Assembly: GCA_965649825.1 (NCBI GenBank)
Contig: OZ287708.1
Span: 13,001 to 77,000, forward strand
DNA: 64,000 bases
Origin: Penicillus capitatus
Taxonomy: Eukaryota; Plantae; Chlorophyta
Reading direction: 5' to 3'
Part shown: positions 18,251-46,571 of the stretch, piece after piece
Numbering within the stretch: position 1 is the first letter of the stretch
Layout of the letters: each line of letters opens with the position of its first letter
Translations under genes and position numbers: made by a program
The notes under the pieces: generated by a model
Seen by the model: only the letters and a program-made list of their open reading frames with translations
The model's database searches: none
Told to the model about the DNA's origin: nothing

Positions 18251-18259
18251 TGGGCCCAC

Positions 18260-24560: not shown

Positions 24561-24568
24561 TGGGAGCA

Positions 24569-24895: not shown

Positions 24896-25539
24896 ACGGT
24901 AAGCGCGTTGAGGAATGCATGTACGAGACCGTTGATCGTCGGCTCCTGGCTTTGCCAGTTGGACTGGCGATTTGGCATTCCTCACCGAACACCGAGTGAG
25001 ATACATGTCAACATCGACGTGCGGGACCGAGTCCAATAGATGCATTGCATTCACAGAACAAGGCATTCTTAGATGATAGTGTGAGAAAACATACATTGGG
25101 TGATGAGCTCTGTGGACTGTAAAACGATCTCAGATGAGCGAGAATGTGTCTGTTCACGATGAATTGGAGTGTCAGCAGACACTGTCTGTCGCGTATGGCA
25201 ACTTTACCTGGCAGGCAAGGAGTGATTGCAGAGCTGATGGCCACAATCAATGAACCGTTGAGTGGAAAATCGAAGAGTTGCGGCATACTCTACGATGGTA
25301 GGCACACAAGACGTCATAGCAGGTCGTACAGTAAGTGCTTAGTATGTTAATCCTTGATTCCCGACGAAAACACTGCAGTGTGTGCGGATGCCAGACGGGT
25401 GTCATCGCTGTCGGTTACAGGGTAACAGACGACCAGCTTCTTCAAACGATGAGTGCCTGCGTCGGTTGGCGATGTATCATACCGTCGTACGGTGAAGGGC
25501 AATGAAAAGTAAGTGATAGGCAGCTTCCTACACGAATGC

Positions 25540-25546
25540 TATAAAA
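25540..25546 (+). promoter_or_regulatory. TATA box of the VWA gene
   Basis: TATAAAA ~60 bp upstream of ATG 25602. Confidence 0.5.
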
Positions 25547-25601
25547 CCCTGCGGTCGCCTTCTCTTTAGCGTAACAACTGTCCATCGCTCGACACTCGAA
25601 G

Positions 25602-27821
25602 ATGTGTCCGACCCACCGTCTACTCTATGTGCTTTTCATTGCGCTAACGGCTTGGTTTCCGGCTCGGGCACAGCCAAGCACAAACATACCACGCTCAATC
25701 CAGGAAGTCATCGCGGAGAAAGAGAATTTCATTCGCGGCTTCGCGAAGTACGCAGAAAGCCTCTACGCGCAGAGAGAGGAGGTCGTCGAGACATGTCAGT
25801 GCGCAAAGCACGCTTGTTCGGACGATTTTGGCGACGTCGAATGCGTCGATTTCTTTGGACAGCATCCCGAGTGCGACTTACCGCACCGCCATATCGACCG
25901 CACGAAGTCGGTCTGTCGAACTCCGCCGAACATCCCAATGGACGAACTGGGTCCGTGGCTTAAAGAGAGCATCTGCGTTTACCAGAATATCACGGGATAC
26001 GTGCAAGAAGCGTGTGGACCGGAATGCAAGTCGATGTACGTCGGTATGTCTCACTCTCCGCCGCGCCGAGGTCACTCTTTTGTCTTAGGCACGAAAGATG
26101 GACACTTTACCATATATCCCGGAAGGGCCCGCGAACGCTACCCCAAAAGCAAATGGAGTGACACGCACGTCTGCGAGGAATACGACCCGCGCAAGCGTCC
26201 GTGGTATGTGGGGGCAAGCACCGGTCCAAAAGACATTGTTCTCGTTCTCGATGTCTCAGGATCCATGGGTGAGCCCATTGACCTGGAAAACAACCCCAAA
26301 TGGGATCTGGTAAAGAGAGCAGCGAGCGAAACGCTTGACACCTTGACCGTGGCTGACCATGTGAATGTGGTGCTCTTCTCCGACGACGCCAAGGTCCTCT
26401 GGACAGAATCTGGACTCGCCAGAGCCCTTTCGGAGAACATCGATAAAATCAAGATGCAGCTGGAGGAAGTGCAGCCAGCGAACAACACGAATTTCACGGC
26501 GGCATTCGAAGCAGCTTTCCCTCTGTTGTGGCGCAACTGTGACGAGGAACCTCCTCCGTGCTCAAAGTGTGAGAAGATTGTGCTCTTCCTGACGGATGGG
26601 CGAGACACGTCCAGAAGACGCGATGAGAGTATCAAACCATCAAAGATGGCTGAAGTGATCGAGGGACTGCAGACGAAACTGGAGAAAGAGACGGGCAAAA
26701 GATCGGCCATCTTCACGTTCTCCATGTCAGAAGACGCCGACGATGCCATTCCACGCCAAATCGCCTGCGCCAACAGCGGAGCGTGGGCATACGTCGGTCC
26801 CAGAACAAACCCGCTGGATTCTCTGCTTTCGTACTACCTGTACACATCCGCCGGGCTGCGCGGCATCTCCCCCGTATGGATTGAGCCTTACGAAGACGCA
26901 AGCGGTTTGGGGATCGTGACGACGGTGGCCCTGCCGATATACGCACGAGGAACAGAGCAGGAACACGACGTCTTCTTGGGCGTCGTCGGGCACCAGGTCC
27001 TCTTGGACGAACTCGTCGGAGAGCACGTCAGTCTGGATGATGTTCTTCACGAACTGATTAAAAGGACAAGAGATTGCCCGTACTCAGTCGAAACGCCATG
27101 CGAGCTCCAAGTCTACCGACACGCTCGCGACGACCGAGCACTCTGTACAGACGCTTTACCCGCGAACGAGACCATTGAAGCCGAGGATGACGAAGTGCGT
27201 TCGGATGAGGATGATGCGACTCGGAATAGTTGCTACGTGTTTAGAAACGACTACTACAGAAGGTCACTCGAAAAGGTTTCATGGAAAGAGGCCGTTTCCA
27301 AATGCGAGGATCATGGAGGTGAGTTGGTCAGCATTGACGATGTCGAAGAGCTTGGCTTCGTCAGTCGAGTCGCATCGATCGACGGATCGTGGGTCGGTGC
27401 TAATAAGGACGGCTATGAAGTTTTTTCTTGGATCGATGATCGACTGCCCCTCCTCGGAAACAATTCCAGTTACTGGGGCGTTCAGGAGCCGATCTTTCAG
27501 ATGGGAAACGAAGAGTGTGCTGCCATCGACACAAGAGGCATTGTTGGAAACATGCACGCCAAGAGTTGTGACAAGAGACTGTCCTACATCTGCAAGTTCA
27601 GATCGGAGGGGCCCTGTGGAGAGAATATTGGCACTATGCCAGACACAGGCTACTTCACAATCCCGCATCTCGGCGCCTGCATTGATATCTCCAACGCGCT
27701 GGAATCGACGCGTCCGCTTTCTCAAGCAAAGAACCTCAGGTCCAGAGAAGTCGTGTGCAGGTTTGGACCCTCAGGAGCAGGAAACGAAGAGGTTATTTGC
27801 TGCGACGGCACTGGCAAGTAG
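25602..27821 (+). CDS. Secreted alpha2-delta/CACHD-like protein (VWA_N, VWA, Cache-like) with C-terminal C-type lectin domain; intronless, 739 aa
   Basis: Signal peptide; YDPRKRPWY; MIDAS DVSGS in DIVLVLDVSGSM; FLTDG; PYEDASGLG; CTL motifs SWKEAVSKC, WVGA, ECAAID, KSCDKRLSYICK. Confidence 0.88.
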   Translation: MCPTHRLLYVLFIALTAWFPARAQPSTNIPRSIQEVIAEKENFIRGFAKYAESLYAQREEVVETCQCAKHACSDDFGDVECVDFFGQHPECDLPHRHIDRTKSVCRTPPNIPMDELGPWLKESICVYQNITGYVQEACGPECKSMYVGMSHSPPRRGHSFVLGTKDGHFTIYPGRARERYPKSKWSDTHVCEEYDPRKRPWYVGASTGPKDIVLVLDVSGSMGEPIDLENNPKWDLVKRAASETLDTLTVADHVNVVLFSDDAKVLWTESGLARALSENIDKIKMQLEEVQPANNTNFTAAFEAAFPLLWRNCDEEPPPCSKCEKIVLFLTDGRDTSRRRDESIKPSKMAEVIEGLQTKLEKETGKRSAIFTFSMSEDADDAIPRQIACANSGAWAYVGPRTNPLDSLLSYYLYTSAGLRGISPVWIEPYEDASGLGIVTTVALPIYARGTEQEHDVFLGVVGHQVLLDELVGEHVSLDDVLHELIKRTRDCPYSVETPCELQVYRHARDDRALCTDALPANETIEAEDDEVRSDEDDATRNSCYVFRNDYYRRSLEKVSWKEAVSKCEDHGGELVSIDDVEELGFVSRVASIDGSWVGANKDGYEVFSWIDDRLPLLGNNSSYWGVQEPIFQMGNEECAAIDTRGIVGNMHAKSCDKRLSYICKFRSEGPCGENIGTMPDTGYFTIPHLGACIDISNALESTRPLSQAKNLRSREVVCRFGPSGAGNEEVICCDGTGK

Positions 27822-28153
27822 CTGACTGATTTCATTCCGTTTTGCAAGGACGTCACGCTAGTGTGACCACACAAAGATACTATTGAAGTTCCCATTGAGG
27901 GAACCGACATTAAGTTTGAATCGACAAGTACCTAGACTAGCAGTCCTGTTCCTTGTGCTTACGACTCGTTGAACGTGCGAAATCTGCGCGAAGTCGAGCG
28001 AAGAGTGTCGAATTCCTCTGCAGTCAGGTGGATTGCAAGGAAGAGAGTGTGTCTCCGCGCAGAATCTCCTCGCTTTCTGCGTCGTTCTTTGGAAGAACGA
28101 ACGTGCATGGGCGCACACCACCGCGAACGTCACATCACGCTTGGCTAGCGAGG

Positions 28154-30517: not shown

Positions 30518-33500
30518 CGCACTCAAACAAACGACGCTTCTTTATGAACGTCAAAGAACGCTGATCCTTTTTGGAAGGACCTGCGAAACCAGATGATGAT
30601 TTTTATTTTTTGTTTTGTAACCGTGGAGAGAAGATGTCTCTTGTGACAAACGATCGTGTCCATGTCGACACGGCGATGAACCTCCATGTAACCTCAAGCA
30701 AACGAAATGTAACAAAGACACTCTTAGCCAACAACAGATCTTGAAAACGCGAATCGTATCTCGCCATCTCCTTCTATGGCAAAGGAAAAAGCGTTCTTTA
30801 CCTCGTTAGCATGAAGTGACCGATGCCAGCTAGAGCATCGCGCGTTGTGTTTGGAGCGATTGTCTAACTGTTAGCTGATCCGAATTCGAAAAGGTACTGA
30901 CTGGAGACAACTTCTCTGTCTGATGCTGCTTCGGAGTCCGTTTCGAGATATTCGCTTGTGCGTGATATGACAGGCAGTGTCTTGACAGACAACACAAGGA
31001 AGTGACGTTTTGCCATCGGAGCTGTACGTAACGATGACTTACTCTGCCTTTTCAAAGACGCAAGCCTACATACACGATGTCCATAACAGTCACTGTCTTT
31101 CATTACTCTCGAGCGATTCAGCTGCTCAAGAGCACAAGCACAACAACCCATCCTTAGTCAGAACACAGCACGCCTGTTTGTTAAACACGCAGAAAAGACA
31201 GAATCGGAAAAGACAGAACACTCCTCAAGGCTTCCAGGATTCAGGTCGAATTCAACCAAGCATGTCTACGCGATTTGGAAGAGATTGTTTCGAGGTGTCG
31301 TGTTCACACATCGACCATTCTCGGAACTCTACAGCTACAAATAACACGGAACTGCAGTTGCCATGCAACAAAGGACGCTTCGCTTGAATCGGTCATCGGA
31401 ATTGAGACTCAGAAAAGGCGTCAGCTGGACATAAGCTTCGGACTAAGCAGACTTCGATTTCTGCGATCTACGAGACGGATCGGCAATCACAGGGATCCTG
31501 CCTTGCGGTTCCAATGAGACACGCGACGTCTCATTTCTTGAGGCCGCTCCGTTGTTGTTCTCTTCGAGCGGCTCTGTCGGTGGACGCTCAGCCTCGCGCC
31601 CGTGTTCATCTATGGTGTTCAGCGGCACGGTTTCTGGGTGCATTTGTGCCGCCTGCAGTGCGGTCTGCAGTTTCTTCTTGCTTCGTAGACGCGACAGGCG
31701 GAACTTCGAAACGCCGATGGCCACCGTCGCGGCCGTGGTGAGCCTGGTCTCGGCGGCGGAGTGATGAAAGGGATGAGAACCGTTTGCGATGTGCTGCAGG
31801 GCAGTCTTCCCTCTCCGATTGACGCCCTGTTTGCTCCGGCGGCGCTGCAAGTGCGGATCCGGGCCGCCGGTCCTGGACCTCTGGCGCAGCGCATCCGCCT
31901 CCGCCTTCATGTCGGCGGTCTCGATCAGCTCGCTCACGAAGCTCAGGAAGAACTCGCGTTCCTCCGACGTCGCCATCGCCAGCCACTGAGCGAGCGGCGC
32001 GTAGTCCCTCCAGTTCACCACGTGCATGAGAGGCAGCGGCTCGACCTTCTTCGAGAGGTAGAAGTTTCGGTAGAGATTCGTGGCGAAGTCGTTGAACGCG
32101 TCCCGACTGTCCTGATCGGCCACGGCGAGGAAATCGACCAGCTGGGGGAACTGGTCGACCAGTCTCCTCCAGAACCTAGCCACGGGATCCGTGGACAGGT
32201 ACGACGTCTCTGAGTTGTCCGCCACGTAGTCCTTGAGCATGTCGGTCAGGCGATCCCAGTCCTTGATGTGTTCCGGATTCCTCTGCAGGCAGCGGTAGAC
32301 GAACCCGGGCCTGAACTTGTCCAGAAGCTCGAAGCTGACGGTCTTGTCCGCGTCCCTCGACCGGACCGTCTCCAGCACGACCTGCGTGACGGCGTTGTTG
32401 ATGACGGTCGAGACCAGCTGCGATCCGATGCCGTCGCCTTCCTTCTTTCCGGCGAAGCACCGATGGCGCTTCTTCAGGGACACGGTGTAGCACTTGTTGG
32501 TGATCTCGGCGGCGAAGATCATGGCGAAGACGACGACCAGCATCAGAGACGTGATCAGGACCAGCCATTCGAGAATCTCCCGGTTCGCATCCGGAAGGTT
32601 CTCGCTGTAGAACATCAGTCCGCCGAACGCCTCGAACAGCAGCGCCACCAGCAGGAAACTGAAGAGGACGTCGAGGTAGGTGTTGACGTAGGGCGCCGTG
32701 TAGATGTGGACCATCAGAGAGGCGTTGATGATCACCGAGATCGCTCCCACCTGGAAGGCGGGATTGTTGACGTAGACCAGCACCAAGACGAAGAGCAGCT
32801 TTCTGAGGATGTCGATGGCCGGAGTGAAGTAGTAATCCAGCTCGTACTTCTCGTAGATGAATCCGTACCTGCGGAGCTGCACGGGATCCACGAAGCCGCC
32901 CTGGGAACGCAGACAGTAGAGCTTCCAGCCGACGAACGCCGGGTAGCCGACGACGAAGACGAGGATGCCCACGATTGCCAGGACGACGGTCTTCATGTGC
33001 TCCTCGTCGCAGACGACGCTCGGATCCGCCCGCAGCACGGAGACGGACGCGACGTTCGTGCACTTGAACACGTCGAAGCAGTACTTGGCGACGGTGATGT
33101 AGGTGGTGTCCACCGATGCCAGCAGCGTCGCGATGGTCGCGTCCCACTTCTGCACGAGCTGCGCGTCGTCCTCGGGGAGGTGCACGAAGAAAGACACCAG
33201 CCGCCTCTTCCGCCCCTCCAGTTTGACCCACCGGTGCTTGTGCAGCACGTAGGCGAGAGCCGATCCCAGATAGCCGCTGCAGCCCATGATCGTCATCAGG
33301 AAGGGAAGCCCCAGCTGCAGCAGGAATCTCTGCCTGAATCCCCACCGAGCGCTGCAGGACGGCTGCATGATGTCCACATCGAAGTCCAGAAGACTGGCCA
33401 GGCCGAACAGCGTGACCACCATGTCCGTCCACTTCAGGTGGATGTCGCCGATGACGTTGGCCAGCTGCGCCCAGTGCAGGACGATCTCGAGCGACGCCAC

Positions 33501-34161
33501 GTTTCGCGACACGACGACGTTGATCATGTACCACACCAGCAGCAGGAAGGTGAAGGCGGCTGCAACGCCTGCCGAGTTTCGGCACGGATAGCACTTCTGA
33601 ATGACGCGGAAGTAGCCGTCGGCGCACTCCGAACACAACCTACAGCGCGGATCCGGACGACGGACGGAAACCGTGTGCTGCCCCACCTGCCCATGTGCCC
33701 CTCCTGACAGTCTCTGCCCGGTCCTCCGACGCAGCTGCTGGGAGGATCGCAGCTGTACACTTCGTTTCGCTGGAGATCTCCGGTCCAGTAACCTTCCTGC
33801 GGAACCGGCAGCCGCATTCCGCCTTCGCACGTCGCTCCCTCGGGACACGGCTCGCACGCCGTGCCCGGTTTCGTCTGGCGGTTCACGTAACCCTGCCTGC
33901 ACACACATTCCTCTACGTCCCTGGCTCCGCGGACGGTTGTCGTCGTTCCCTCCGGACAAGGCCTGCACGCCTTCTGCGCCAGCTGATCCGACCACGTCCC
34001 GATCGGGCAGTTGTCGCAGTGATCGGCGTCGACCTGATCCGAAAACTCTCCCCGCGTGCAGGCCTCGCAGGGGTCGAACGGATCCGGGCCGACATACGAG
34101 CCTGGCATGCACTTCTCCCTGTAGCGGTTCCTCGCCGGATAGTTCAGCAACTCGGTGGCGT

Positions 34162-34547
34162 TGTCGCCAAGATCTGGCTTGGCGATGTGACTGCCCAGAG
34201 GGTCACATCGCTTAAAACGGAGAAAAACCCTGGGTCTGTGAACCTTTGTAAGCCTTTTGCGTTCTGCGTTACGTGCGTGTGTAAGCGAAATCCATCCTGG
34301 ATAACGACGAAGCGCAACCGCCTTCGCGTGCAGTTGTTCCTTACCCTCCTTTGTACCAAAACACGCCATATCTGTCGGCGCTAGCGTTCTTCAGACAAGC
34401 GGAACGTGGGAGCTCTGACGTGACCGAGTCCATAGCGCAGGACGGTACCCAAGTCGACGATCGACTGGTCCATCCTGTGGAGGCAGGACCAACCGACGCA
34501 GAAGCCGACGAAGAAGCACCACGAAGGGAATTATCCCAAGAGCGACA
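34162..34547 (+). repeat. 5' LTR of element 2
   Basis: TGTCGCC...GAGCGACA; no difference seen versus 39414-39799. Confidence 0.98.
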
Positions 34548-34549
34548 AG

Positions 34550-34564
34550 TGGTTTCGGAGCGAG
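34550..34564 (+). promoter_or_regulatory. Primer-binding site of element 2
   Basis: TGGTTTCGGAGCGAG, 2 nt after the LTR; identical to the element 1 PBS. Confidence 0.88.
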
Positions 34565-34593
34565 GCTACGGCGAAGTAGAAGGGGTAGACAAG

Positions 34594-36411
34594 ATGCAGC
34601 AAAAAGCCTGGCTGTGTCTCTTTGCGTTGTTTTACCTTCTTGTCTCTGCGGCAATAATCGCGGGACACGCGGAGAATTCAACAGAGAAGGAAAGGTCGGA
34701 GAAGGAGCTCCAAGATGAGTTTAAGGAATCAGGGGCAACATTGGCTGACTTGTTACAAAGGATCAAAGCCTTAGAAAAGGAAGCGGCCGAGTTCAGGGCA
34801 GAAGCTCGGAGGGAGAGGGCCGCACGGATACAGCTGAATGAGGAGGTGCAAATACTTAGGAAGGAAAATGAGCGCCTTCGAGATCGGATGGAAGCGGAGA
34901 TTATTAACGAGGTGCTTGAGGAGGGGCAAAAATTACGTTTGGAGGCCACGAGGACATGGTGGGAGTGGCTGACGGGGACGGCTCCCCCGGGCGTGGAGGT
35001 GGAGAGAACGACCACGATCGAGGGTTGCCAAGATTTGAAGTGTTGCTTTGGAATGTGGTGGACGACCGTGGGAGAACTATTCCATCAAACAACGGATCTT
35101 ATTTATCGATTCGTGTGGGATCCATATGGCACTGGAGGCCACTGGGCATCGGGTCTGTTTAGCGCCGGCTTCTGGGGACCGGTGCTCGGAATAACGATCC
35201 TAGTGGTGGTGGTGAATCTCCTACTGCTGGCTGTCTTCCGAGCGGCTGATATATGGAAGGGAATGAAGGGGCTGGCCAGTAGGTTGGGAGGGCTGCCCAT
35301 GTTTAAGCTCGTGGGTATGGCCTTCTCGAAGCTGCGAAGGGGAGAGGGGCCAGAGGGGACCTCCCCTGAACTCCAGGAGATGCGAAGGACCGTAGAAAAG
35401 CTTCAGAAGACCGTGGAGACGAGTCAGCGGAAGGGAAAGGAGCAACGGGAGATGAGGGAGCTCCGTGGGCAGGTGGAGAACCTCATGGCCAAGTGCGAGC
35501 AACAGGCGCCTCCAGGAGAGGATGTGCAGACGAAGACCGTGAGAGAGATGCAGGCATTTTTCCAGCAGCAACTCGATCAGCTACGAAGGGAGTTCATACA
35601 TACGGGGAAGCAACCAGGACCTGCACCGATCCCGGTGGATATGTCTCCCCGTCGGAGGCAGAATCCTGGTTCAATGCCACCAGGGGGGAGGCAACGCTAC
35701 TGTGAGCGCTGCAAGAAATGGCATCCGGGACTTGAGTGCTGGGATTGCACCAAGTGCAGAACGTGTGGTGCAACAGGAATGTGCGAACACCGGGCAAAGA
35801 TCGTGGAGAACAACCGAAGACGATCCCCTACTCCCAGGCCGGAGAGGACGAGAGCTGTGGCGGTATGTGAGCGGGAGGAGTCTGAAGCGATGTGGGATTG
35901 GGACGCGAGGTTAGTGGAGGAGGCATCGCAAACGGGATCTTCAATCTCCTTCTCGACGAAAGGGGAGGGAAGTGGAGAACCGGGCACACAAGAGTCGGTC
36001 GTTGCGGTGGTGGACAAAGAGGCTAAGGGATACCGTCTGCGAGGACACTTGGCTGTGGGAGGAGGGGTAGCTCCTTGCACGTTCCTTATCGACACTGGCT
36101 CGGAAGTGAATTTGCTGAGTGAGAAGACGTGCACGCGCCTAGGAGTGGGTATTCAGTCGGCAGGACCTGACAAGCCAAACTTGGCAGGGGTGTCCGGAGA
36201 GCGGTTAGAGGTGACGGGGCAGGCGATCTTAGAGACTCGGTTTGGTCAAGAGGAGGGGAAGGCGATTCGTTATTGGGTCGCGAAGAACGTAAGAGACATA
36301 ATTGGGATTCCTGGAATAGGGCAGCTGGGGATTTCATTGACGAACCCGGGTCACATGGCAGTGTTTCCCTCGGGGCAGAAACTTTTTTGTCAGGTGGTGC
36401 AAAAAAACTAA
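34594..36411 (+). CDS. ORF1 of element 2 (605 aa): signal peptide, coiled coil, W-rich segment, TM helix, coiled coil, Cys/His Zn-binding cluster, aspartic protease; no capsid recognised
   Basis: MQQKAWLCLFALFYLLVSAAIIAG leader; GPVLGITILVVVVNLLLLAVF; CERCKKWHPGLECWDCTKCRTC; FLIDTGS; ends A-AAA-AAC-TAA. Confidence 0.88.
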   Translation: MQQKAWLCLFALFYLLVSAAIIAGHAENSTEKERSEKELQDEFKESGATLADLLQRIKALEKEAAEFRAEARRERAARIQLNEEVQILRKENERLRDRMEAEIINEVLEEGQKLRLEATRTWWEWLTGTAPPGVEVERTTTIEGCQDLKCCFGMWWTTVGELFHQTTDLIYRFVWDPYGTGGHWASGLFSAGFWGPVLGITILVVVVNLLLLAVFRAADIWKGMKGLASRLGGLPMFKLVGMAFSKLRRGEGPEGTSPELQEMRRTVEKLQKTVETSQRKGKEQREMRELRGQVENLMAKCEQQAPPGEDVQTKTVREMQAFFQQQLDQLRREFIHTGKQPGPAPIPVDMSPRRRQNPGSMPPGGRQRYCERCKKWHPGLECWDCTKCRTCGATGMCEHRAKIVENNRRRSPTPRPERTRAVAVCEREESEAMWDWDARLVEEASQTGSSISFSTKGEGSGEPGTQESVVAVVDKEAKGYRLRGHLAVGGGVAPCTFLIDTGSEVNLLSEKTCTRLGVGIQSAGPDKPNLAGVSGERLEVTGQAILETRFGQEEGKAIRYWVAKNVRDIIGIPGIGQLGISLTNPGHMAVFPSGQKLFCQVVQKN

Positions 36412-36437
36412 AGGGCTCTCCCGCGCAGACGGGAGAG
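36402..36437 (+). promoter_or_regulatory. -1 programmed frameshift signal
   Basis: Slippery AAAAAAC (36402-36408), 7-nt spacer, 8-bp stem CTCTCCCG/CGGGAGAG. The -1 frame is the pol ORF. Confidence 0.85.
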
Positions 36438-39383
36438 GGGGGTGGTACTTTGAAAAGGGATAAAAGAAAACAAAAAGAGGGGGAAATCAGCACGCTCTGT
36501 TGTAAGAGCGTTTCATTAAAGCAACTGTGGGTATATGAGCCGAAGTGGCGCATTTTATGCAGGGGGAACGTGCTGCAACTGCCATTGGGCAAGACCACAT
36601 ACATCCCACCCAGGGAATCAATGCGGGTTTGTTTGCCCTGGGAGGTCAGGGGCGCAGATTTGACCGGTTTTTTCTCTCTACTGCATCGTAAGGAGGTATC
36701 GGTATCAAGCCAGTTTAGCGCAAAGTCGGGACGGATCCATGTGTTGTTGCTTAATTTCGGATCGGAGGTGGCTGTCATAGCTGCCAAAACGTTTGTCCTG
36801 GGTGTGGGGTCGCAAGGGTCGTTCTTTCATGTGTGCACGGCCGATGGGCGAGAACATCAGTTGTCTAATGGTATGGGGGTTGAGTGTGGGGCGAAGGGAT
36901 GGGCGGTTGCGAGCGTTAGCTCGGAGCCAAAATTTTTTGCCCAGTTCCCTCAGTTGTTTTGTGAAGATACGTGTCGGATTCCGGAGCACATGCAAAGGTT
37001 TCGGGTCCGGAAGGACGACATTTCTTGGGTGGGGGACATGATCTATCGGGGGAAGTGTGCGGTCAATGTGGAAAATCTGGTCCCGGCGCGGGCCATAGAT
37101 GAGACGGTTGAATCGATGCTGCGTGATGGCTATGTGGAGGAGGTGGGGGACAGTTCGTCGCTCATGTTGCATCCGTTGATCTTCCTCCCGAAGCCAGACG
37201 GGCGTACGCGCTTAGTCATCGATTTACGACGTATCAATGGTCATACACGACACACGAGGGGGGGACTACCAGCGATACATACTGTGTTTCGCCAAGTGCC
37301 GACCACATGGCGTTTTTTTTGTAAAATTGATATTAAGAATGGTTACCATAGGGTACCAGTGGAACGTTCATTGGGGGATTTATTTGCATTTGGTATACGC
37401 CGCCGTTTCTTTCGATACAAGGTATTGCCTCAGGGATGGGCGGCTAGTCCGCATATTTTCCATGCTGTCATGATGGAAATATGCTCTGGCCATGAGGCAA
37501 TACATTATATTGATGACATAATACTGGGGGCGTCGACCCTAAATGAATTGACTGCGCGGGTTTCTGCTCTGTTAGCCACCCTACAGAAATACGGATTGCA
37601 GATACAGCAGAAGAAGTTTCTTTTTGGAAAGGAATCTGTAGAGTTCTTGGGTTTTGAGCTCCGGAGTGGGGGGCGTGTGAGTGCTGAAAGCTATTTACAG
37701 AAGCGAAGGGAGGCACTGGAAGGTCGAATAGAAACAAAAAGAGACCTGCAGAGTCTGCTGGGGACATTGAACGTCGCTCGGCACTTCGTACCAGGGCTCA
37801 GCCAAAAGACGGCTGGGTTGCAGAAGTTGTTGCTGGCTATGGCGAGCAGTAGCTTGGGGACGGAAGAAAAGGAGCAGGCTCACGAGTTGGCGAAGAAGGC
37901 CTGGGGGGAGGTGTTGGAATCCTGTGTAACAGTGCAGATGGCGATGCCAGAGAAGGCCAGATTTGAGTTGTACACGGATTGGTCAACGGAGGCGATGGGA
38001 TACGTCCTTTTTGCTGAAGGGGAGGACGGGCGTCATATCACAGACATCAACTCCACAAGGGCAGTCGAGCGGACAGCCGTGAGCAGCTTCCTGGGGGAGC
38101 TGCGGGGAATTGTGTGGGCACTGAAGAAGACGCGACATATCGTCTGGACCTCGGCAATCAAGGTCTGCTGTGACAATCAAGGCACAGTAGCTCGCTTGCA
38201 GAAGGGGGATGTCATGGGGGATGATGTTCGATGTTCTCGACTCATGGGATGGCTGTGGGGAAACTTCCCCCAAGTACAGTTTGAGTATGTACCTGGCGCA
38301 ATCAACCAAGTGGCAGATTACCTGAGTCGGAGAAAAGGCCAGCAGAAGGAGGGGAAGGTGGTAGGAGCAGTTATGCTTCAGCAGCGGCCTCTCGTTGACG
38401 TGGTAAGGAGCCGTCTGGAAAAGGCACATCAGGGTCACTGGCACGCAGAAAGGACGTGGCAACATCTGAAACGGGATGGCCCGGTTTGGCCGGGAGCAAG
38501 GAAGGAGGTGTTCCAGTATGTGGAGCAGTGCCCCAATTGCCAACATTTTCGTGGCTTAGAGCACCGGGAACCATGGACGGGGATGGAGATAACTCACCCA
38601 AACGATGTTGTTTTCGGAGATTTTCTGGGGCCTATTACTTTGAGTCGGGGGCGAGGAAAACGAGTCCTTCTGGTGTTGGTCGACGGTTTCAGTCGCATCA
38701 CGCACTTACACGTGGCTAAGACTCCCACGGAAAGAACGGTCCTGCGAGGATTGAAGCGATGGGAACAAGCTTTATCATGGAAACATGGACATATTCGTAT
38801 GTTCATGGCAGATAGAGGAGCGGCATTCATCGGCGGAGGGGTTCGAGCATTCTGTGAGGAGCATGGGATCAAGCAACGGTGGTCGCCAAGTCATGCACCT
38901 TGGTGCAATGGTGCAGCAGAGCGACAGGTGGGAAACGTGAAGACAAGATTGGCCAAGATACTCTGGAAGTCTGCCGAGGACATCTCTATCCATACGTTGG
39001 AGGAGATTTTGAACCAAGGGATTTGCGAGACCACGGGTTTCACACCCATGGAATTGTGCTGGGGAAGACGACGTGACGGCAGCTTGATGACGGACATGGA
39101 GTGGGAGCAGGCCATGCACCTCGCTCAACAGAAAAGAGCGGCTGGGCGACAGAGGGACAGGGAAGCATACCTTCGAAAATTTTCGAGCAAGCCGCCGCTA
39201 CAGACAGGACAATGGGTTCTGGCGTATGAACCTCATAGAAAGCGCCATGCACTCCATTCGCCGTGGACAGGTCCTCACCTAACTGCGGAGCCGCGGGGGT
39301 CGAGATTATGGATGGTGTGGAAAAATGGAAGTTCTCGAAGAGTGGGACCATTTCATGCAGAACATTTGCGGTTATATTGCTAG
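36408..39383 (+). CDS. pol: Pol of element 2 (dUTPase-like, RT, RNase H, integrase)
   Basis: KIDIKNGY, LPQG, YIDD; LYTDW...ELRGIVWAL...CDN...ADYLSR; HQGH...CPNC; GDF, ADRG, AAER; no stops. Confidence 0.95.
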   Translation, partial: LKGSPAQTGEGGGTLKRDKRKQKEGEISTLCCKSVSLKQLWVYEPKWRILCRGNVLQLPLGKTTYIPPRESMRVCLPWEVRGADLTGFFSLLHRKEVSVSSQFSAKSGRIHVLLLNFGSEVAVIAAKTFVLGVGSQGSFFHVCTADGREHQLSNGMGVECGAKGWAVASVSSEPKFFAQFPQLFCEDTCRIPEHMQRFRVRKDDISWVGDMIYRGKCAVNVENLVPARAIDETVESMLRDGYVEEVGDSSSLMLHPLIFLPKPDGRTRLVIDLRRINGHTRHTRGGLPAIHTVFRQVPTTWRFFCKIDIKNGYHRVPVERSLGDLFAFGIRRRFFRYKVLPQGWAASPHIFHAVMMEICSGHEAIHYIDDIILGASTLNELTARVSALLATLQKYGLQIQQKKFLFGKESVEFLGFELRSGGRVSAESYLQKRREALEGRIETKRDLQSLLGTLNVARHFVPGLSQKTAGLQKLLLAMASSSLGTEEKEQAHELAKKAWGEVLESCVTVQMAMPEKARFELYTDWSTEAMGYVLFAEGEDGRHITDINSTRAVERTAVSSFLGELRGIVWALKKTRHIVWTSAIKVCCDNQGTVARLQKGDVMGDDVRCSRLMGWLWGNFPQVQFEYVPGAINQVADYLSRRKGQQKEGKVVGAVMLQQRPLVDVVRSRLEKAHQGHWHAERTWQHLKRDGPVWPGARKEVFQYVEQCPNCQHFRGLEHREPWTGMEITHPNDVVFGDFLGPITLSRGRGKRVLLVLVDGFSRITHLHVAKTPTERTVLRGLKRWEQALSWKHGHIRMFMADRGAAFIGGGVRAFCEEHGIKQRWSPSHAPWCNGAAERQVGNVKTRLAKILWKSAEDISIHTLEEILNQGICETTGFTPMELCWGRRRDGSLMTDMEWEQAMHLAQQKRAAGRQRDREAYLRKFSSKPPLQTGQWVLAYEPHRKRHALHSPWTGPHLTAEPRGSRLWMVWKNGSSRRVGPFHAEHLRLYC

Positions 39384-39413
39384 GGTGATCGTCAGAGTTG
39401 GCGGGAAGCGTGG

Positions 39414-39799
39414 TGTCGCCAAGATCTGGCTTGGCGATGTGACTGCCCAGAGGGTCACATCGCTTAAAACGGAGAAAAACCCTGGGTCTGTGAACCTTTG
39501 TAAGCCTTTTGCGTTCTGCGTTACGTGCGTGTGTAAGCGAAATCCATCCTGGATAACGACGAAGCGCAACCGCCTTCGCGTGCAGTTGTTCCTTACCCTC
39601 CTTTGTACCAAAACACGCCATATCTGTCGGCGCTAGCGTTCTTCAGACAAGCGGAACGTGGGAGCTCTGACGTGACCGAGTCCATAGCGCAGGACGGTAC
39701 CCAAGTCGACGATCGACTGGTCCATCCTGTGGAGGCAGGACCAACCGACGCAGAAGCCGACGAAGAAGCACCACGAAGGGAATTATCCCAAGAGCGACA
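39414..39799 (+). repeat. 3' LTR of element 2
   Basis: Identical to the 5' LTR; preceded by purine-rich AGAGTTGGCGGGAAGCGTGG. Confidence 0.98.
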
Positions 39800-41519
39800 G
39801 GCGTGTCCGACCGGCAAGACGGGAACGATCTTTCGGCACGTCCTCCCGCTATCGTCCTCGGACACGACCACCTGCGTCGTCACCGGATCCAGGAGTACGT
39901 TGCGTCGATACTCGTTGAACTCGACGCCGCCGAAGAAGGTCTCCTCCATCTCCAGGGCGGCCAGAGCGTCGAGCACGCGTTGATATCCGTTGCCGCCCCC
40001 ATCTCCGTCGCACTGGATCGCGCTCTCGTCGTAAAGCAGCGCGTCGACGTCTCCCAGAGTCGCCGAGATATCGCAGTCGACGAAGGCCTCTCGAATGGCC
40101 TGCGTCAGCGTCAGCCCGACAGCAGAGGCTCCGGCCGCCACGTACGTCGGCGTCTGGCCGTCGAACCTCTCCCGGTATCTCTGCGCATAACCCTGCGCCG
40201 AACCGAAGAAGGCGTCCTGGTAGTTCAGTCCGTGGTGCCACTGCGCGGCGCTGAGCAGGTCGTCTGCCACATAGGGCGGCTCGAAGGCGTCCACCCATTC
40301 CTGCTTCGTCGGGCCCACCGTCAGGAAGAAGCCCTTCAGGGGATACCGGATCCGGTGAAAGGCTTCGACCAGAGCCTTGCCGTCGTCCGGAAAGACGCAC
40401 GCCACGACGACTTCGATCTCGTTGTCCCGGACATCTTTGGCGATCTCCAGAGCTGCGTCATCCGTCAGGGTCTGGTTGAAGGCGTACATCACGCGGATGC
40501 CGCTCTCCATCATCCACACGCCGTTCGAGTCACGGTAGAAACCGCTGGCCGCTTCGCACGTCGTGCGCGTGAACGGATCGTCCTGCTGGGAAACGAACAC
40601 CATGGTGCGGACGTCGGCCACTTGCATGGTCCGAATGACCAGCTTCGTGTACTGCAAGTTGGAGACCTGGATGCCGTAGACGGTGCGGTGATTCTGCCGG
40701 TAGAGGTAGTCGGGCCCAACACAGCAGTGGTAGTTCAGGACATCAGCTTCACTGGCCAGACGCATCTGCGTTTCGGCAAAGGCTGGATGGGACCCTCCGA
40801 GGAAGTGCACTCTCTCCTTTCCGATGAGCTTCTGCACTTGTCGCCGATGCAGCTCCGCATCGCTGCGGTCCTCGCGGGCGAGAAAACGGAACTGGAAATG
40901 GAATCCCCCTGTGGCGTTCTTTCCTTTGAGCCAGAATCCGCGGTTGTCGTTTTCCGCGTTGACGGTCTCGAAGTACAGCTGGTAGCCATTCCTCGCCTCG
41001 ACGAAGTCCCTCTTTGCGCCAATCGTGCTGAAGACGCCGCCGAAACGGAAGGCCGAATCGGCTGCGACGCCAATCGCGAACAGGAGACAGAGAAAAAGCT
41101 TCATGCAATAGCGCAGGGACAGGAAACGCATTGAAGGTGTGGTTGTCTGTCTGTTAGTAAATCTGCCTCGTAATGATTGCGTACTCCAGTCGTACACGTG
41201 CAGACCTTCGGCCATCTTTCGTAGACTCGGCTAACAATCCACCTCGGATGACAGTGTCCAATCGTTTTCAGTACAGCGCAAGTCAACGACGGTCTCGTAG
41301 ACAGCAGATGACTGAGCTTTAGACAGTGAAGCACGGCTTCTGATCGAAGGTCGGTTTGCGAAGACGGGACCCGAGCTTAGGAGTGAGATGGACAGCTGAT
41401 GATTGAGGGCGTCGACAGTGCTTTGCGTCCCACCGTCCGGAGTGCGCCAGGGCGGCAGATTGTCGTTGGAACGGGCCGGTGTGCCGCTGCATCCTTATCG
41501 AAATCGTCCATGCCGTTGC

Positions 41520-42080
41520 ATTTCTAGTGTCTGGTGAGTTCTGAGACAATGAGGGCTGCGACGGAGAGCGTCCGTCTTCTGTAAGAGACCACTTGTCAAA
41601 ATTCCTTGCAGCGAGAGACGAACAGTTACCGCCGACTGCTCTGAGTGCGTATGGCGTTCTGGGACGATGCCGTCAACGCTTCCGAGATCTCGGGCATCGC
41701 AAGGACCGCCGGCACTCGAGTGCACGCCTCTCGGACAGAGGCATAGCGCCTTAGCGTTATCAACAGGCAATAGTGCTTCGCATAGAGAGGGCTGAGCAGT
41801 TGTCCAACCACGGACATGCTACGCGAGGTGCCAGCTGAGTTCCTGAACTTAAGCACATATCGGATGCTCGGATTAGCCGTTGTCCTTGTCTGCCGGCGGA
41901 AGACGATGCGCCGAAGAGATCTGTGGATGCCGGACGGCTTCGCCGAACTGATGGCGACGAGATTGACGACGCATTGCTTCCTGCAACCCCTTCAGCACAG
42001 TCGGGAAGGGGTCGATGTTATAGTTTTCCGTCGTCGCTTCGTAACTCGCTCGCGATAAATAGCGTCAAGACATTGGAATT
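41520..42080 (+). pseudogene. 'Gene X' fragment with part A joined directly to part B
   Basis: 41520-41680 matches ~7930-8100 and 41680-42080 matches ~325-715. Confidence 0.4.
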
Positions 42081-43079
42081 CAATTGCTTACAATGCTTGT
42101 ACAGTGTCACTCTTTTTAAAAAAGGTGTGATTTCGAGTAAAAAAGTGTTACAATTCTGGTTAAAGGACGCCAGCTTATACCTCGTCACTCGTTTGAAAAG
42201 TGTGACATACAGAAAAGAGTGTCACAATGGTAGTTCACGCAAAATAAAATGTCCACCCCGCCACAAAGTCTGCAGAGAAAGAGTGAGAAGGTGTGAATGT
42301 GCGATGAGAGAACTTACGGTCGGCGAGCGGCGCCTCACAGTGCGGCGCGGGCGGTCTCCCTGAACGAACACTGACACCGATTCCAGTCAGAGTGCGCGAG
42401 GAGAACGAAATGCAACTGAGGATCGACTACTAGGAAGCAGGTGTGCCTCTCTCGGTGCAGCGACGCGCAGCGCGGACATGCAGGAAAGGGGTCATGACAT
42501 GGAAGAGGAAAAAAAGACCCGAGTAAACACAGGCACAGCAGGAAAACAGCAAAGAAAGCAAACTGACACATGCAAGTAGTAAACAGGCAGGAAAAGGTAA
42601 AAAGCAACAGTAAACACAAAAGGAAAATAAGGTAACAGGCAAGCAGGAAAGGAAAAAGACACAGGAAAGGAAAGGAAAGAACAACAAAACAAGCAGGGAG
42701 AATCACAAGAGAGACACCCAGGAGGGAGCAGAGAGGAAAAAGAACAGAAAAGACGGTCCTGGGTGTTTGAGAGAAGCACACCACCGCCGTTCATCGGCAG
42801 TGTACATCCGCCTGCCCCGTGTGCGCGACCCCAAAAGGCGGGCAGGTCGCCAAGGCCCTACCCGCTGGTGCCGCGAAGGGTGCGCGGCACCGCTGCCTCG
42901 GGGTGGGGAAGTGGATGCGGTTCGCTGGGTGATGCTGATGTGCTCTCCGATGTTCTGGAGCTCCAGATGTCGAGTCTGACTTGCTCCATGTTCAAGTTCT
43001 TAGTTACTTGCCACAAAGCTTAGATTCTCTGAGTGTTCGGTCAGTTTTTCATCATGAGTCTGTCATCCAACCACATGTC

Positions 43080-45700
43080 AAGAGAAGAAAGAGGTGTGTA
43101 GGTAGTCTTACTCTTGATTGTTGGTGTCAGTGAGAGGTCCCTTCGCTGAGACGAAGACAGAGGCGGGAACTGAGACCAGGTTGACTAACCAATTCTCGAT
43201 GACACCACCAGAAGGCTGCTGCTGACAATGCCTTCTGTCCACTGATCAACTTGGGCAGGCTTCTAATCCAGATGTCTCTGCAATCCATGGTGGCACTGGA
43301 TTTGATGCTTCTAATCCCATCCAGAGAAGAATGCTTGAATCGGTGGATGACTGAAGTCCGCATAGCAGGCTCCTCCTCCAGCCATGTCTGCTTTGACGCT
43401 TCTCTTGAGCACAGAATGATGATTCTGTCTCCTCTCTGTGTACCTGCGGCCTCGCTAAGAGAGGAGAGAGTGTTAAGAATGCTAACCTGTCGATTGCGTT
43501 CTTCGTGTGTGGACTGTTGATCTCTGTCAGGAGCGGAGTTGAATGTGACTGTTTGCATCAGCTTCAGTCGAGACTTCTTCCTTCCATTGACAGCTCGCTC
43601 AGTGGACTGTCATGCCTCTCCAGTGGTATTAGCAGTCGATGACAGAGGTCCCGTCCGCTGAAGACTGTGATCGAGCGAACAACACATCGATGCCCGGTTG
43701 AGAAGACCCGATCCGGCTTGGGACACACACATCACTTCTTTCCAGCTGAATGTGATGTGCTGCTCATCGACAGACATCCTTCCACTACCTGACATAACAT
43801 GATCAAACGCACTCTAAGACTTCAAGGATGACCTTAATATGTGTGTCTTCCAGTGGGATGTCGAGCATGGGCAGATGGGTGCTGTAGATTCTGTCGATAG
43901 TTGTTCGTGGTTGTATTCATACAAAACTCCAGAAGCCATCCATGGAGGTACCAGAGTGTCACGTGCCCAGTCACTCGATGATTGACGGACACATTTTCTT
44001 GTCTTGGCAGAGATCAAGCCATTTCCTCGATAACACCCCTATTTCAAATGGGCCTAGAGAAAAACATCTAAGCATGGTAGTCGTTTCGATGACCTCACCT
44101 ATTGGGTAATGGATTGTAGCTAGTCATTCTATCAGACTTCTTGAACCATGCTTTCTGTTGCACTGGAAAAGTTCTTTATGACACCAGTCATCACACATTG
44201 GATTTTGAACAAGCTCGGCGTCTCCAGACTGGCGAAATGTATCTCTTGTAGTGATCGCTTCACGAGTTCCAATCCTCTGTTAGATGCCGAATGCCTGCGA
44301 TGCGGAAAACCCGACTTGCTTCCCTTGGATGGATGCTTCCTTGCAGCAGCTGGATTCTTCAGACTCCGTGGAAACCAATCGGTCCATCTTGGCATCTTCG
44401 ACAGAAAGGTTGTCTCTGTGAACCTTCTTCTGAGGGATTGAGAGTGGTTGAGACCAGAATTCTCCGGACGTGCTTGTCGGAGTCTTTCGTTGAGAGGTTT
44501 CATGGAAATCACACGACGGATTCTTCAGACCAACAGGCGGCATGTCTGTTCTTGCGAAGATAACTTGCTCCAAAGGCAAACAGATTCTGTGTGTGCTGAA
44601 TGCCTTTTGGGTTGATGAGACTGTTCTCAGTGTCCTTAGGTGGATGTCTCCACACTGTATATTAGATTCTGGAGCTCCAGCGAGACCGAATGATTCATCT
44701 GGACTCTTCTTGAGCAGCTGGTTTTCGTTCGCTGTGTTCCAGGAGACAAAGGATGATCGATCCATGTAGACTTCGGTGCTTTCCAGGATCTCTTGTTGTA
44801 CTTCAGCACGATTCAGCGCGACAGATTCCTCACAGACTACCAGCTTCAGACTGACACGAGGCTTCCTCTTCCAGGTGGCTCCATTGCCTCTGTCATCGTC
44901 CCAATCTCTCCGAGCAATGCTGCACCTCCACGCGGCCGAAGATGCGGCAGTTGTTCATAGACGAACGTCTTCATGCACAGGGTGGATTCCAAAACGCATC
45001 AACGAAATCTGCTTCAGTCTCGTGCAGGGAAGAAAGATTCCGCTTCTCCGGAAGATCACTCGTTAGGATCGGGTATCCAGTTGTCTTGAGCGGATATGCG
45101 ATCGGAGACTTGGTCGACTGGATCCTCTTGCACGACGAAGCTCTGCATCTCTTGAAAACACGCTGAGCGGATCCTACCCTGAAACAATCCCTGTTCTGGC
45201 CAGATCACAATGCGTCTGAAAAAAAACCTGACAGGTCTTACAGTGGAGGATTGGATGAATGGTTGTCCATACAGGCACTCTGGCAGCAAACAGTGCGTTC
45301 CAGAACTGAGGGTATGCACTCGAAAGACCATCTCTCCATTGCCATTGAGGCACGAGCATCTTCAGTCTTTGTCGTCGTCACGTAGACCATGCATTCCCTG
45401 GGCACACTCAATGCTCCAGACCATAATGACTTCGCCACAGCACATTCCCCGATGACACAGAACGAGGCCAGACTCTGACAAAACAACGAAGGTTGGTGCG
45501 TGGCTTCAAAAGGAACTGAGTTGATGCAACCTGGTTGCCTCTAGCAACCCTTCTAGAACCACAGAGGAGTAAGATCTGAAAAGTGAACTAAGAGTGACTC
45601 ACTCTTCTCGTATCATTGATCGATCCAAATAACTTTTCCTGGATGCAACTCTCATGATGTCACCAAATGGGCCTTGTCTGAAACAGGTGACACAATCGGG
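43080..45700 (-). mobile_element. Decayed RTE-like LINE ORF2, copy 3
   Basis: Collinear with 1730-4330; QVGFS remnant; many stops. Confidence 0.55.
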
Positions 45701-46571
45701 ACGAAACACTAAGCAAAAAAGGAATGTTATGCAGCAGCACGTGTAAACTGAACACAGCATCTCCAGGCGACAAATCCTCAGATCGGACATGACGGCCTCC
45801 AGACAGAAAAACGGCAGGTAGAACACGGCAGCTCAGGGCAGCAAAACAGCGAGTAGAACTCGACAGTCTACATCCAGAATAAGGAAACAACTATGACATG
45901 CAAGCCTCTCCACGCAGCAAAACACCAAAAGGACGCAGCAGAACTCCATGCAGCTAGATAGCAAGTACGAACAAGACAGCTTAGTGGAGTAAAACAGAAA
46001 ACAAAATGACCACAGCTTTCAGGCAACAAAAGAGCAAATGAGGAATGAGATCATCATAGCAGTTTAGCAGCTGATATGACATGGCATCATCTGGGCAGCA
46101 AAACAGCAACTAGGACATGCCAGCCTCCGTACAGCAGATCAGAAATCAAGACGACGCCAGCCTCCAGGCAGAAAACAGCAGGTAAGACAACGCCAGCCTC
46201 CGTGCAACAGCTCAGAAATCAGAACGATGCTAGCCTCCAGGCAGCAGATCAGAAATCAAGACAACGCCAGCCTCCCTCCAGGCAGAAAGATTGCAGATCG
46301 GACCAAGATACTTCAACAGAAAAAAACAGATAAGATACGACAGCTTTCATGCACCAAAACAGCTAAAACAAGGCCAGCCACAACAAAGCGAGGGTTGCCG
46401 GCCAGAAAACAGCACACAATGAAAAACAGCCCCCTTGGATCTTTTTGTTTTTTTTTTTTTTAAAAATTTTTATGTCACACTTTTAAGTGTGACTCTATTT
46501 GTTTTTTTTATTTTTTCTAACCCACACAAAAAACAGCATCTGTATAGGAGGAGAACAGGCCCTTAGGCAGA

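Follow-up and report, generated by a model that had tools for sequence, protein, structure and literature searches.

To our knowledge, all well-studied LTR retrotransposons and retroviruses carry out reverse transcription within a shell built from the conserved capsid (CA) fold. Arc, PEG10 and other domesticated genes are based on the same fold. In retroviral class I TM subunits, a heptad-repeat helix is followed by a Cys turn, a second helix, an aromatic membrane-proximal region and the TM segment. Errantivirus-type elements encode an Env in its own ORF after pol; this Env adopts the F-type or gB-type fusogen fold, and a capsid-forming Gag is encoded alongside it (PMC13524379). The sORF2/FAST-like proteins of MDG1-group LTR retrotransposons are reported to be short stand-alone accessory proteins of elements that retain their capsids (10.1101/2025.03.14.642691). 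RNPs without a capsid are formed by LINE-1 type ORF1p, a coiled-coil RNA-binding protein (PMC5940361). No published account of a membrane-anchored or capsid-less LTR element was found in our literature search.

The analyzed window is a stretch of 64,000 nucleotides of Penicillus capitatus DNA, and it contains an LTR retrotransposon of 5.6 kb (34162-39799; all features described here lie on the forward strand). The 5' LTR (34162..34547) and the 3' LTR (39414..39799) are 386 nt each and 100% identical, have TG..CA ends within a 6-bp terminal inverted repeat (TGTCGC/GCGACA), and are flanked by the 5-bp target-site duplication (TSD) GGCGT (34157..34161 and 39800..39804). The primer-binding site (PBS) TGGTTTCGGAGCGAGG (34550..34565) starts 2 nt past the 5' LTR and is conserved across all relatives; it occurs in L001-L004, in a second element in the same window (element 2) and, as its core, in L008; no tRNA genes that could be candidates for the primer were found in the window or in the loci of the relatives. 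A polypurine-rich tract (39400..39413), which is kept in relatives, lies upstream of the 3' LTR. The initial annotation had described the element as just transposed with an intact pol, and this holds, as the LTRs are identical, pol is intact, and an independent second insertion was found elsewhere: the copy in L002 differs from the window copy by 0.4%, the two occupy different insertion sites, and both are intact. Identical LTRs and TSDs are likewise present in L001, L002 and L003. Besides ORF1 and pol, only two sense ORFs of at least 80 aa were found in the element (82 and 87 aa), both within pol in other frames. The 3' LTR begins 30 nt after pol, and a separate env ORF downstream of pol is absent. 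It was also considered that the element might interrupt one long host ORF, and this was rejected, since on joining the flanks the ANF-receptor-like and TRP-like host ORFs of the same strand were found to be in different frames.

The intact pol (36411..39383) is in the -1 frame relative to ORF1. The frameshift heptamer A AAA AAC (36402..36408) is located immediately 5' of the ORF1 stop codon and is identical in L001, L003 and L004; a stimulatory hairpin is predicted downstream (36417..36436), for which RNAalifold analysis of four sequences gave 7 pairs, 2 of them with compensatory changes. These signals indicate that Pol would be produced as an ORF1-Pol fusion through -1 frameshifting, and the fact that the programmed frameshift has been kept suggests that the role of ORF1 is stoichiometric and structural. 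The Pfam and PDB profile matches follow the Ty3-like order PR-RT-RNaseH-IN, with RT at 37188-37661, RNase H at 37944-38333, the IN zinc domain at 38415-38549 and the IN core at 38592-38897, and the closest PDB matches of pol are Ty3 Gag-Pol (E=1.5e-30) and Ty3 RT (9.6e-24) (7q5b, 4ol8). The element is best read as an autonomous Ty3/Metaviridae-type LTR retrotransposon whose gag-equivalent is without MA-CA.

This gag-equivalent, ORF1 (34594..36411; first ATG at 34594, TAA at 36409-36411), encodes 605 aa that comprise a membrane module, a nucleocapsid (NC) region and a protease, and the earlier description of a membrane protein fused to a Zn cluster and a protease is thus borne out by hydropathy, by the alignment of the zinc knuckles and by the retropepsin fold. 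Kyte-Doolittle (KD) means in a 19-aa window show two TM-grade peaks only, at aa 3-27 (mean 2.44) and aa ~193-218 (3.0). The first belongs to an N-terminal hydrophobic signal peptide or signal anchor (aa 1-27; 34594..34674). Of the signal peptide proposed previously, the N-terminal hydrophobic stretch stands; in the clade of the window element it is long (18-19 aa) and may be an uncleaved anchor and not a cleaved signal peptide. In relatives, small-x-small motifs follow the h-region. The start codon of the relatives is assembled from the LTR end and the PBS, and because their start is the ATG at this junction, the first hydrophobic segment is truly N-terminal. Extensions of ~90-110 aa in P0002, P0003 and P0005, with which the first hydrophobic helix would no longer be terminal, lie inside the LTR and have no in-frame ATG, and were rejected. 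Such false N-terminal extensions of database relatives are a product of a bacterial-type gene caller.

The structure of ORF1 was modeled with AlphaFold as a monomer from a 14-sequence alignment (mean pLDDT 70, pTM 0.24), which gave helices at aa 2-46, 50-110 (pLDDT 84-94), 148-175, 194-232, 235-248, 258-304 and 310-337, followed by zinc-knuckle hairpins. Heptad-like periodicity was found in the coil segments, in agreement with the long ectodomain coil and the two short coils proposed from the first inspection of the sequence. The ectodomain, ~165 aa in total, begins with the coiled coil (aa 28-127; 34675..34974), in which a conserved N-x-T/S sequon is present at aa 28 and for which PDB profile matches are of the coiled-coil type only. 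It continues with a Trp/Cys-rich membrane-proximal segment (aa 128-192; 34975..35169) that carries a DP-x-G motif and the motif C145-x4-C150-C151 (nt 35026-35046) and has the lowest non-synonymous divergence in ORF1; the Trp/Cys richness noted earlier was recovered, as aa 119-196 contain 8 Trp along with 3 Cys that are conserved. The transmembrane helix (aa 193-218; KD 3.0), with an invariant Asn208, lies where it had been placed before (35170..35247). The adjoining stretch, previously called amphipathic, is better described as a conserved, moderately hydrophobic juxtamembrane helix with an invariant Pro235 (aa 226-250; 35269..35343; KD19 0.7-2.2), which may be in-plane or spanning. A spanning arrangement would leave NC-PR-Pol on the wrong face of the membrane.

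Two coiled-coil helices (aa 258-337; 35365..35604), predicted to be on the cytoplasmic side, are indicated by the AlphaFold model, by heptads and by coiled-coil PDB matches; the distance from the TM helix to the Zn cluster is about 150 aa and not the ~120 aa given originally. In hhalign, the Cys/His cluster at aa 370-399 aligns, with a probability of 96.9%, with the pair of CCHC knuckles found in conventional gypsy Gags, and two NC-like zinc knuckles were assigned to aa 368-400 (35695..35793); canonical CCHC knuckles are present in distant family members. The linker that follows (aa 401-485; 35794..36048) had been taken for low-complexity sequence; it contains a conserved Cys425-Glu and a conserved S-x-I/V-S-F/L motif. 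The C-terminal domain (aa 486-605; 36049..36408) is a retropepsin with a DTG active site, as found with Pfam and with Foldseek, which matches it to retroviral and DDI1 proteases at a probability of 1.00, and it aligns with the element 2 protease in hhalign (98.5%). Conserved late-domain motifs of the types P(T/S)AP, PPxY and YPxL were not found in the ORF1 family. On the basis of hydropathy and charge, ORF1 is best read as a type-I membrane protein standing in for MA-CA.

No CA domain was detectable in ORF1 by Pfam, PDB profiles, AlphaFold with Foldseek, or profile-profile comparison. None of the 14 family members matched a gag or CA family of Pfam, the PDB profile search with ORF1 gave coiled-coil noise only and no CA, and in hhalign comparisons with conventional gypsy Gags the zinc knuckles alone aligned. 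Foldseek with the ORF1 monomer model gave 0 matches at E<=1e-3 in PDB and BFVD, a search that a novel shell built from the cytoplasmic helices would escape. The methods have power, because the positive controls worked: conventional Gags retrieved with the same profile match Retrotrans_gag/Ty3_capsid, and Foldseek recovers the protease fold of ORF1. For CA, the absence of a CA/MHR motif noted at the outset was upheld by structure-based and profile-based comparison. A CA in another ORF of the element was rejected, the other sense ORFs being the two short ones inside pol, nor is there support for a CA concealed in the stretch of ~250 aa that separates the frameshift site from RT, since this region looks beta-rich, has no Pfam or PDB match and is absent from P0016. 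The ectodomain, compared as part of the same monomer model with PDB and BFVD, gave no Foldseek match to known fusogen folds (F-type, gB-type or class I) or to scaffold folds.

The family gave 26 matches among 1.84 billion representative proteins. Approximately 14 homologues, with 17-53% identity to the window ORF1, share the full ORF1 architecture, and because the whole layout is conserved among them the architecture is not a chance arrangement. The cysteines C150 and C151, N208 and P235 are invariant in 14 sequences, and C145 and P177 are nearly so. The TM helix has a KD value of at least 1.98 in all 14 members and is followed by net positive charge in each of them, and the second hydrophobic helix, that of Pro235, attains TM-grade hydropathy in 5 of the 14. 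Constraint within ORF1 is strongest in the ectodomain, where non-synonymous divergence (pN) is 0.09-0.28 versus 0.34-0.47 in PR, a comparison made with synonymous sites saturated. In P0016, the membrane module is linked to a pol that is 36% identical to the window pol. No relatives emerged when JGI metagenomes and IMG/VR were scanned with the family alignment, and a word-indexed protein search with the same alignment gave nothing further. Exact matches to the 19-mer formed by the LTR end and the PBS were found in JGI metagenomes only in two bacterial rsmE-like genes and were regarded as chance. The family is thus extremely rare in present databases, and it comes from poorly sampled eukaryotes.

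The best explanation of this anatomy is that the gag-equivalent lost MA-CA, or never had it, and that a type-I (or hairpin) membrane module is there instead; with such a module in place of the capsid, the element RNA may be packaged against a membrane and not in a protein shell. Judging from the anatomy of ORF1, we give an even chance to the proposal that membrane-anchored ORF1 replaces MA-CA and that a membrane-bounded compartment does the job of the capsid shell. ORF1 would be inserted co-translationally into the ER membrane and would oligomerise via its coiled coils and the TM Asn, while the knuckles would bind element RNA on the cytosolic face. RNA, PR, RT and IN would thereby be concentrated on or in a membrane-bounded compartment, which, whether bud, vesicle or invagination, would act as the capsid shell. 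The conserved ectodomain, directed toward the lumen or the outside, might scaffold and curve the membrane, or drive membrane fusion to release the contents, and the frameshift would preserve the usual surplus of structural protein over Pol. A general precedent is the reported sufficiency of membrane anchoring combined with higher-order oligomerisation for sorting into vesicles (PMC1885833). A stronger form of the proposal, which we regard as possible and put forward tentatively, is that the protein capsid is wholly dispensed with and that one type-I membrane protein, whose ectodomain would be a fusogen-like coiled coil and whose tail is NC-PR(-RT-IN), would serve as both Env and Gag. The particle would then be a vesicle lined by RNA-bound tails, and the sister lineage of element 2, with its large, glycosylated ectodomain, would take the design further.

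Alternatively, a capsid could be supplied in trans: the family would be non-autonomous for the shell, a different resident LTR element would provide the Gag that packages its RNA and ORF1-Pol, and the membrane module would have another use, such as Env-like or FAST-like cell-to-cell transfer. An element that itself has no detectable CA fits such a dependence, other LTR elements are also present in the genomes holding the family, and conventional gypsy Gags whose zinc knuckles closely resemble those of ORF1 are present in the databases; moreover, short membrane proteins that promote capsid transfer are reported from the MDG1 group (10.1101/2025.03.14.642691). Element 2 has the same PBS and LTR termini as the first element and an ORF1 composed of a signal peptide, a large ectodomain, membrane helices and NC-PR. 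No CA was detectable in this ORF1 either. In hhalign the protease alone aligns between the two elements, so that homology between their membrane modules was rejected. The initial annotation had raised a dependence of all copies on a capsid-encoding partner with matching LTR/PBS; the sole matching element seen is element 2, and to that extent such a partner is disfavoured. Furthermore, NC and PR are tethered to a membrane protein, and cleavage would be needed before they could enter the capsid of another element. That ORF1 is itself the abundant structural protein is suggested by the frameshift ratio together with the strong constraint, and several diverged lineages carry identical LTRs, each having been recently active. 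Because the strongest constraint in ORF1 falls on the membrane module, which has been kept together with the frameshift through deep divergence, and because no CA is detectable in the membrane-type ORF1 of element 2 either, we consider packaging in trans unlikely.

It is likewise improbable, in our estimation, that the element builds a shell of an unrecognisable kind, in which the helices of aa 219-340, perhaps together with the beta-looking domain of pol, would form a non-CA lattice and the TM helix would be an MA-like anchor only. The conserved helices that separate the membrane from NC, ~120 aa in all, could contribute to such a lattice, as could a conserved ~150-aa domain of unassigned function after the frameshift site (~36516-36950), and in element 2 a helical domain of ~75 aa, likewise conserved, lies immediately N-terminal to the knuckle. 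However, the helices are long, single and heptad-like and do not form a compact bundle, the pol domain is conserved in the close clade only and is missing from P0016, no fold or profile match was obtained, and the top conservation of the ectodomain would be left unexplained. Finally, an artefact or dead element, with an N-terminal module that is not translated with NC-PR or hydrophobic segments that are not membrane helices, and with copies that are decaying relics, could be suggested by the bacterial-type gene calls in the databases, some of them falsely extended, but is highly improbable given a single uninterrupted frame under purifying selection across 40-55% protein divergence, a hydropathy of 2-3 kept in all members, and two intact copies at different sites with identical LTRs and TSDs.

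If replacement of the shell by a membrane is true, the capsid would be shown to be replaceable in the LTR-element class, and the element would be a natural case of membrane-scaffolded packaging of a retroelement genome and a possible intermediate for the merging or exchange of envelope and core functions. Compared with known systems, the element shares with Ty3/gypsy (Metaviridae) the TG..CA LTRs, 5-bp TSD, tRNA-type PBS, PPT, -1 frameshift between gag and pol, and PR-RT-RNaseH-IN order, as well as an RT that is nearest to that of Ty3 and NC knuckles homologous to those of conventional gypsy Gags. In contrast to Ty3/gypsy, it is devoid of a CA/Retrotrans_gag/Ty3_capsid domain, NC is preceded by a signal peptide, an ectodomain and a TM helix, PR is in the gag frame, and the start codon of its relatives comes from the LTR end and the PBS. 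With the Env-carrying errantiviruses it has in common a signal-peptide/TM ectodomain protein encoded by a retroelement, whereas here the membrane protein makes up the N-terminal portion of the gag-equivalent, no fold match was obtained for it, and a separate env ORF is absent. The sORF2 proteins are similarly reported to be non-Env membrane proteins of LTR retrotransposons with a proposed membrane role in transmission, whereas the module described here, of ~250 aa and with a long ectodomain coil, is fused covalently to NC-PR(-Pol) within a 605-aa ORF1. The resemblance to class I TM subunits is limited to a superficial order of motifs, including C-x4-CC, with no sequence or fold similarity found; ORF1 also differs from them in being strongly hydrophilic after the signal sequence, with no fusion peptide, in lacking an SU partner, in its Cys spacing and in having NC-PR as its cytoplasmic tail. 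The ORF1p of LINEs is non-homologous (coiled-coil noise, E=0.43), soluble and from a non-LTR element, and it offers a functional analogy for the cytoplasmic half of ORF1, in that both have a coiled-coil oligomerisation domain adjoining a nucleic-acid-binding domain.

The element under study (element 1) is a compact LTR retrotransposon at positions 34162-39799 (+), recognized by its LTRs, target duplication, primer-binding site (PBS) and pol. Its two LTRs, of 386 nt each, are identical, start with TG, end with CA and carry a 6-bp terminal inverted repeat, and the 5-bp target duplication GGCGT is present on both flanks. The PBS, TGGTTTCGGAGCGAGG, is located 2 bases 3' of the 5' LTR, and a purine-rich tract lies upstream of the 3' LTR. 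ORF1 (34594-36411, +; 605 aa), the gag equivalent, ends in the heptamer A AAA AAC immediately 5' of the stop codon, and a hairpin starts 8 nt past it. Three diverged relatives keep both heptamer and hairpin, and two pairs are compensatory; pol is therefore considered to be translated through a -1 frameshift, which gives an ORF1-Pol fusion. Pol encodes, without interruption, RT, RNase H, the integrase zinc domain and the integrase core, and the closest solved structures are Ty3 Gag-Pol and Ty3 RT. The only further sense ORFs of at least 80 aa in element 1 are two (82 and 87 aa), both within pol in other frames. Identical LTRs, target duplication and uninterrupted pol bear out the recent transposition with an intact pol proposed in the initial annotation.

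The window represents eukaryotic nuclear DNA, as it contains adjoining U4 and U5 spliceosomal snRNA genes (56427-56557 and 56629-56742, -; Rfam 106.7 and 69.4 bits). Three copies of a unit of about 10 kb share 72-96% identity (about 1-10000, 10000-28000 and 41300-52700), and a second LTR element (element 2) sits in the second of them. Other ORFs include one with VWA and C-type lectin domains (25602-27821) and one of 670 aa with weak FAST-kinase-like (FAST_1) matches (54348-56360, -). Element 1 is flanked by host ORFs, TRP-channel-like and ANF-receptor/periplasmic-binding-like, at 31443-34112 and 39593-41215 (-). The possibility that it splits one host ORF was rejected because the flanks, once joined, are not in one frame; element 1 thus lies between two same-strand ORFs or exons.

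Among 1.84 billion representative proteins, a profile search retrieved only 26 matches at E ≤ 1e-3, and 13 of these share the entire design with the window protein: a signal sequence, a coil, (V/I)-E-G-C-x4-C-C, D-P-x-G, a TM helix in which one Asn is invariant, an L-P helix, another coil and zinc knuckles. The protease (PR) follows in the same frame in some of these 14 family members, and others stop ahead of it; the relative P0016 continues into a pol with 36% identity to that of element 1. Hydropathy analysis of ORF1 detected two TM-grade peaks, at aa 3-27 and about 193-218. The AlphaFold model, built from the 14-sequence alignment (mean pLDDT 70), is an extended, all-helical chain with a long confident helix at 50-110, further helices at 148-175, 194-232 (the TM helix), 235-248, 258-304 and 310-337, and then two small zinc-knuckle hairpins. 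Eight Trp residues and the motif C145-x4-C150-C151 are found within aa 119-196. The zinc cluster matches both CCHC knuckles of conventional gypsy Gags (hhalign probability 96.9%), and the last 120 aa form a retropepsin fold with DTG. The view of ORF1 as a membrane protein joined to a zinc cluster and a protease is supported. The net charge is positive past the TM helix in all 14 members and mostly zero or negative ahead of it; this bias predicts a luminal or external ectodomain, with the zinc-knuckle part (NC), PR and Pol on the cytoplasmic side. In 5 of the 14 members, the hydropathy of a Pro-containing helix that follows the TM helix is TM-grade, and the side predicted for NC, PR and Pol depends on how this helix is disposed.

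A hydrophobic stretch occupies the extreme N-terminus of ORF1 in all cases. In the database loci L001 (8364-8385) and L003 (8340-8361), the A of the first ATG is the final base of the 5' LTR and its TG belongs to the PBS, which thereby encodes the first residues, MVSERG. In the window copy (34548-34593) this junction reads GTG, and the ORF starts 15 codons further on, at the next ATG. The same PBS core was also found in a distant relative, P0014 (locus L008, about 283-296). In distant members the hydrophobic stretch is short, with small-x-small motifs after it, like cleaved signal peptides; in the clade of the window copy it spans 18-19 residues and might be retained as an anchor, the rest of the topology being the same either way. 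An extension of about 90-110 aa ahead of this helix in database relatives was rejected, as it falls in the LTR, lacks an in-frame ATG and stems from a bacterial-type gene caller. In the ORF1 frame, the 120-140 codons that precede the ATG within the LTR are open and ATG-free (L001 7941-8363, L003 7977-8339); their translation appears conserved between lineages, for which coding or LTR nucleotide conservation are both possible sources.

No gag or CA family was detected in any of the 14 members (Pfam, E ≤ 1), and the family profile gave coiled-coil noise only against all PDB sequences. In the structural check foreseen in the initial annotation, Foldseek returned no match for the ORF1 model at E ≤ 1e-3 in PDB or BFVD. 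Profile-profile comparison with conventional gypsy Gags aligned the zinc knuckles alone. Two controls were positive: Foldseek recovered retroviral proteases from the ORF1 model, and conventional Gags caught by the same profile via their knuckles do match Retrotrans_gag and Ty3_capsid. The reported absence of a visible CA thus holds. A conserved, beta-looking domain of about 150 aa (about 36516-36950, +) is encoded past the frameshift site and ahead of RT, also in L001, L003 and L004; it is missing from P0016 and has no match in Pfam or PDB. Since CA is all-helical, this domain is probably not one. A capsid provided in trans is a minor possibility, and we give a similarly low chance to a shell non-homologous to CA that the cytoplasmic helices would build.

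Comparison of the window copy with two relatives showed saturation at synonymous sites; the ectodomain has the lowest non-synonymous divergence (0.09-0.28), and the protease exceeds it (0.34-0.47). Each of three diverged lineages from one sample, and a near-identical copy from another, has identical LTRs and its own target duplication; the window and L002 copies, both intact and each at a site of its own, differ at 0.4% of positions. That the element is an artefact or dead is highly improbable. JGI metagenome and IMG/VR scans gave no relatives. Two database proteins, P0009 and P0011, combine signal sequence, coil, C-x4-CC and TM module but lack zinc knuckle and protease; they are possibly truncated copies, or derivatives retained by the host.

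Element 2 (17944-24889, -) has LTRs of about 306 nt with one mismatch, and its LTR termini and PBS are the same as those of element 1. Its ORF1 (21255-24584, -) opens with MVSER and a signal peptide, followed by an ectodomain of about 550 aa (five N-x-S/T sequons), two hydrophobic helices, a Pro/Gln-rich linker, a coiled coil, a conserved helical domain of about 75 aa, a CCHC knuckle and a protease; no CA was detectable in this element. It has four database relatives, and its pol frame is broken once, by a frame change within RT. The two ORF1 proteins show detectable homology in the protease only, and the pol sequences are 26% identical. Given this membrane-type ORF1 with NC-PR, the same PBS and the distant pol, a membrane protein fused to NC-PR is, judging from sequence, a design common to two distant lineages with the same primer.

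The interpretation in the initial annotation, packaging in a membrane vesicle or ER-bound compartment or with a capsid in trans, is partly supported. As the most likely mechanism, we infer that the ORF1 protein would insert into the ER membrane and that its coiled coils would drive oligomerization, to which the invariant Asn probably adds, because polar residues in TM helices drive helix association. The knuckles would bind RNA at the cytosolic face, frameshifting would yield a minority of membrane-tethered ORF1-Pol, and the membrane (as bud, vesicle or invagination) would substitute for the CA shell. According to PMC1885833, membrane anchoring and higher-order oligomerization suffice to sort proteins into vesicles. 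The strongly constrained, Trp-rich and disulfide-capable ectodomain would have a specific task, either to scaffold or curve the membrane from its opposite side or to act in membrane fusion. Against this mechanism count the lack of a conserved late-domain motif, the lack of a Foldseek match to a fusogen fold for the ectodomain (PDB, BFVD) and the second hydrophobic helix, which may span the membrane.

The literature searched yielded no account of an LTR element that is membrane-anchored and CA-less. Element 1 agrees with the Ty3/gypsy type in LTRs, PBS, polypurine tract, frameshift, pol order and RT similarity, but departs from it in having no gag with a detectable CA. It differs from the errantivirus type in having neither a separate env nor a known Env fold, and from the sORF2/FAST type, which is described as a short accessory protein beside a capsid (10.1101/2025.03.14.642691). 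The likeness of the ectodomain to a class I TM subunit is confined to motif order, and the cytoplasmic half, a coiled coil with a nucleic-acid binder, is alike on paper, though not homologous, to LINE ORF1p.
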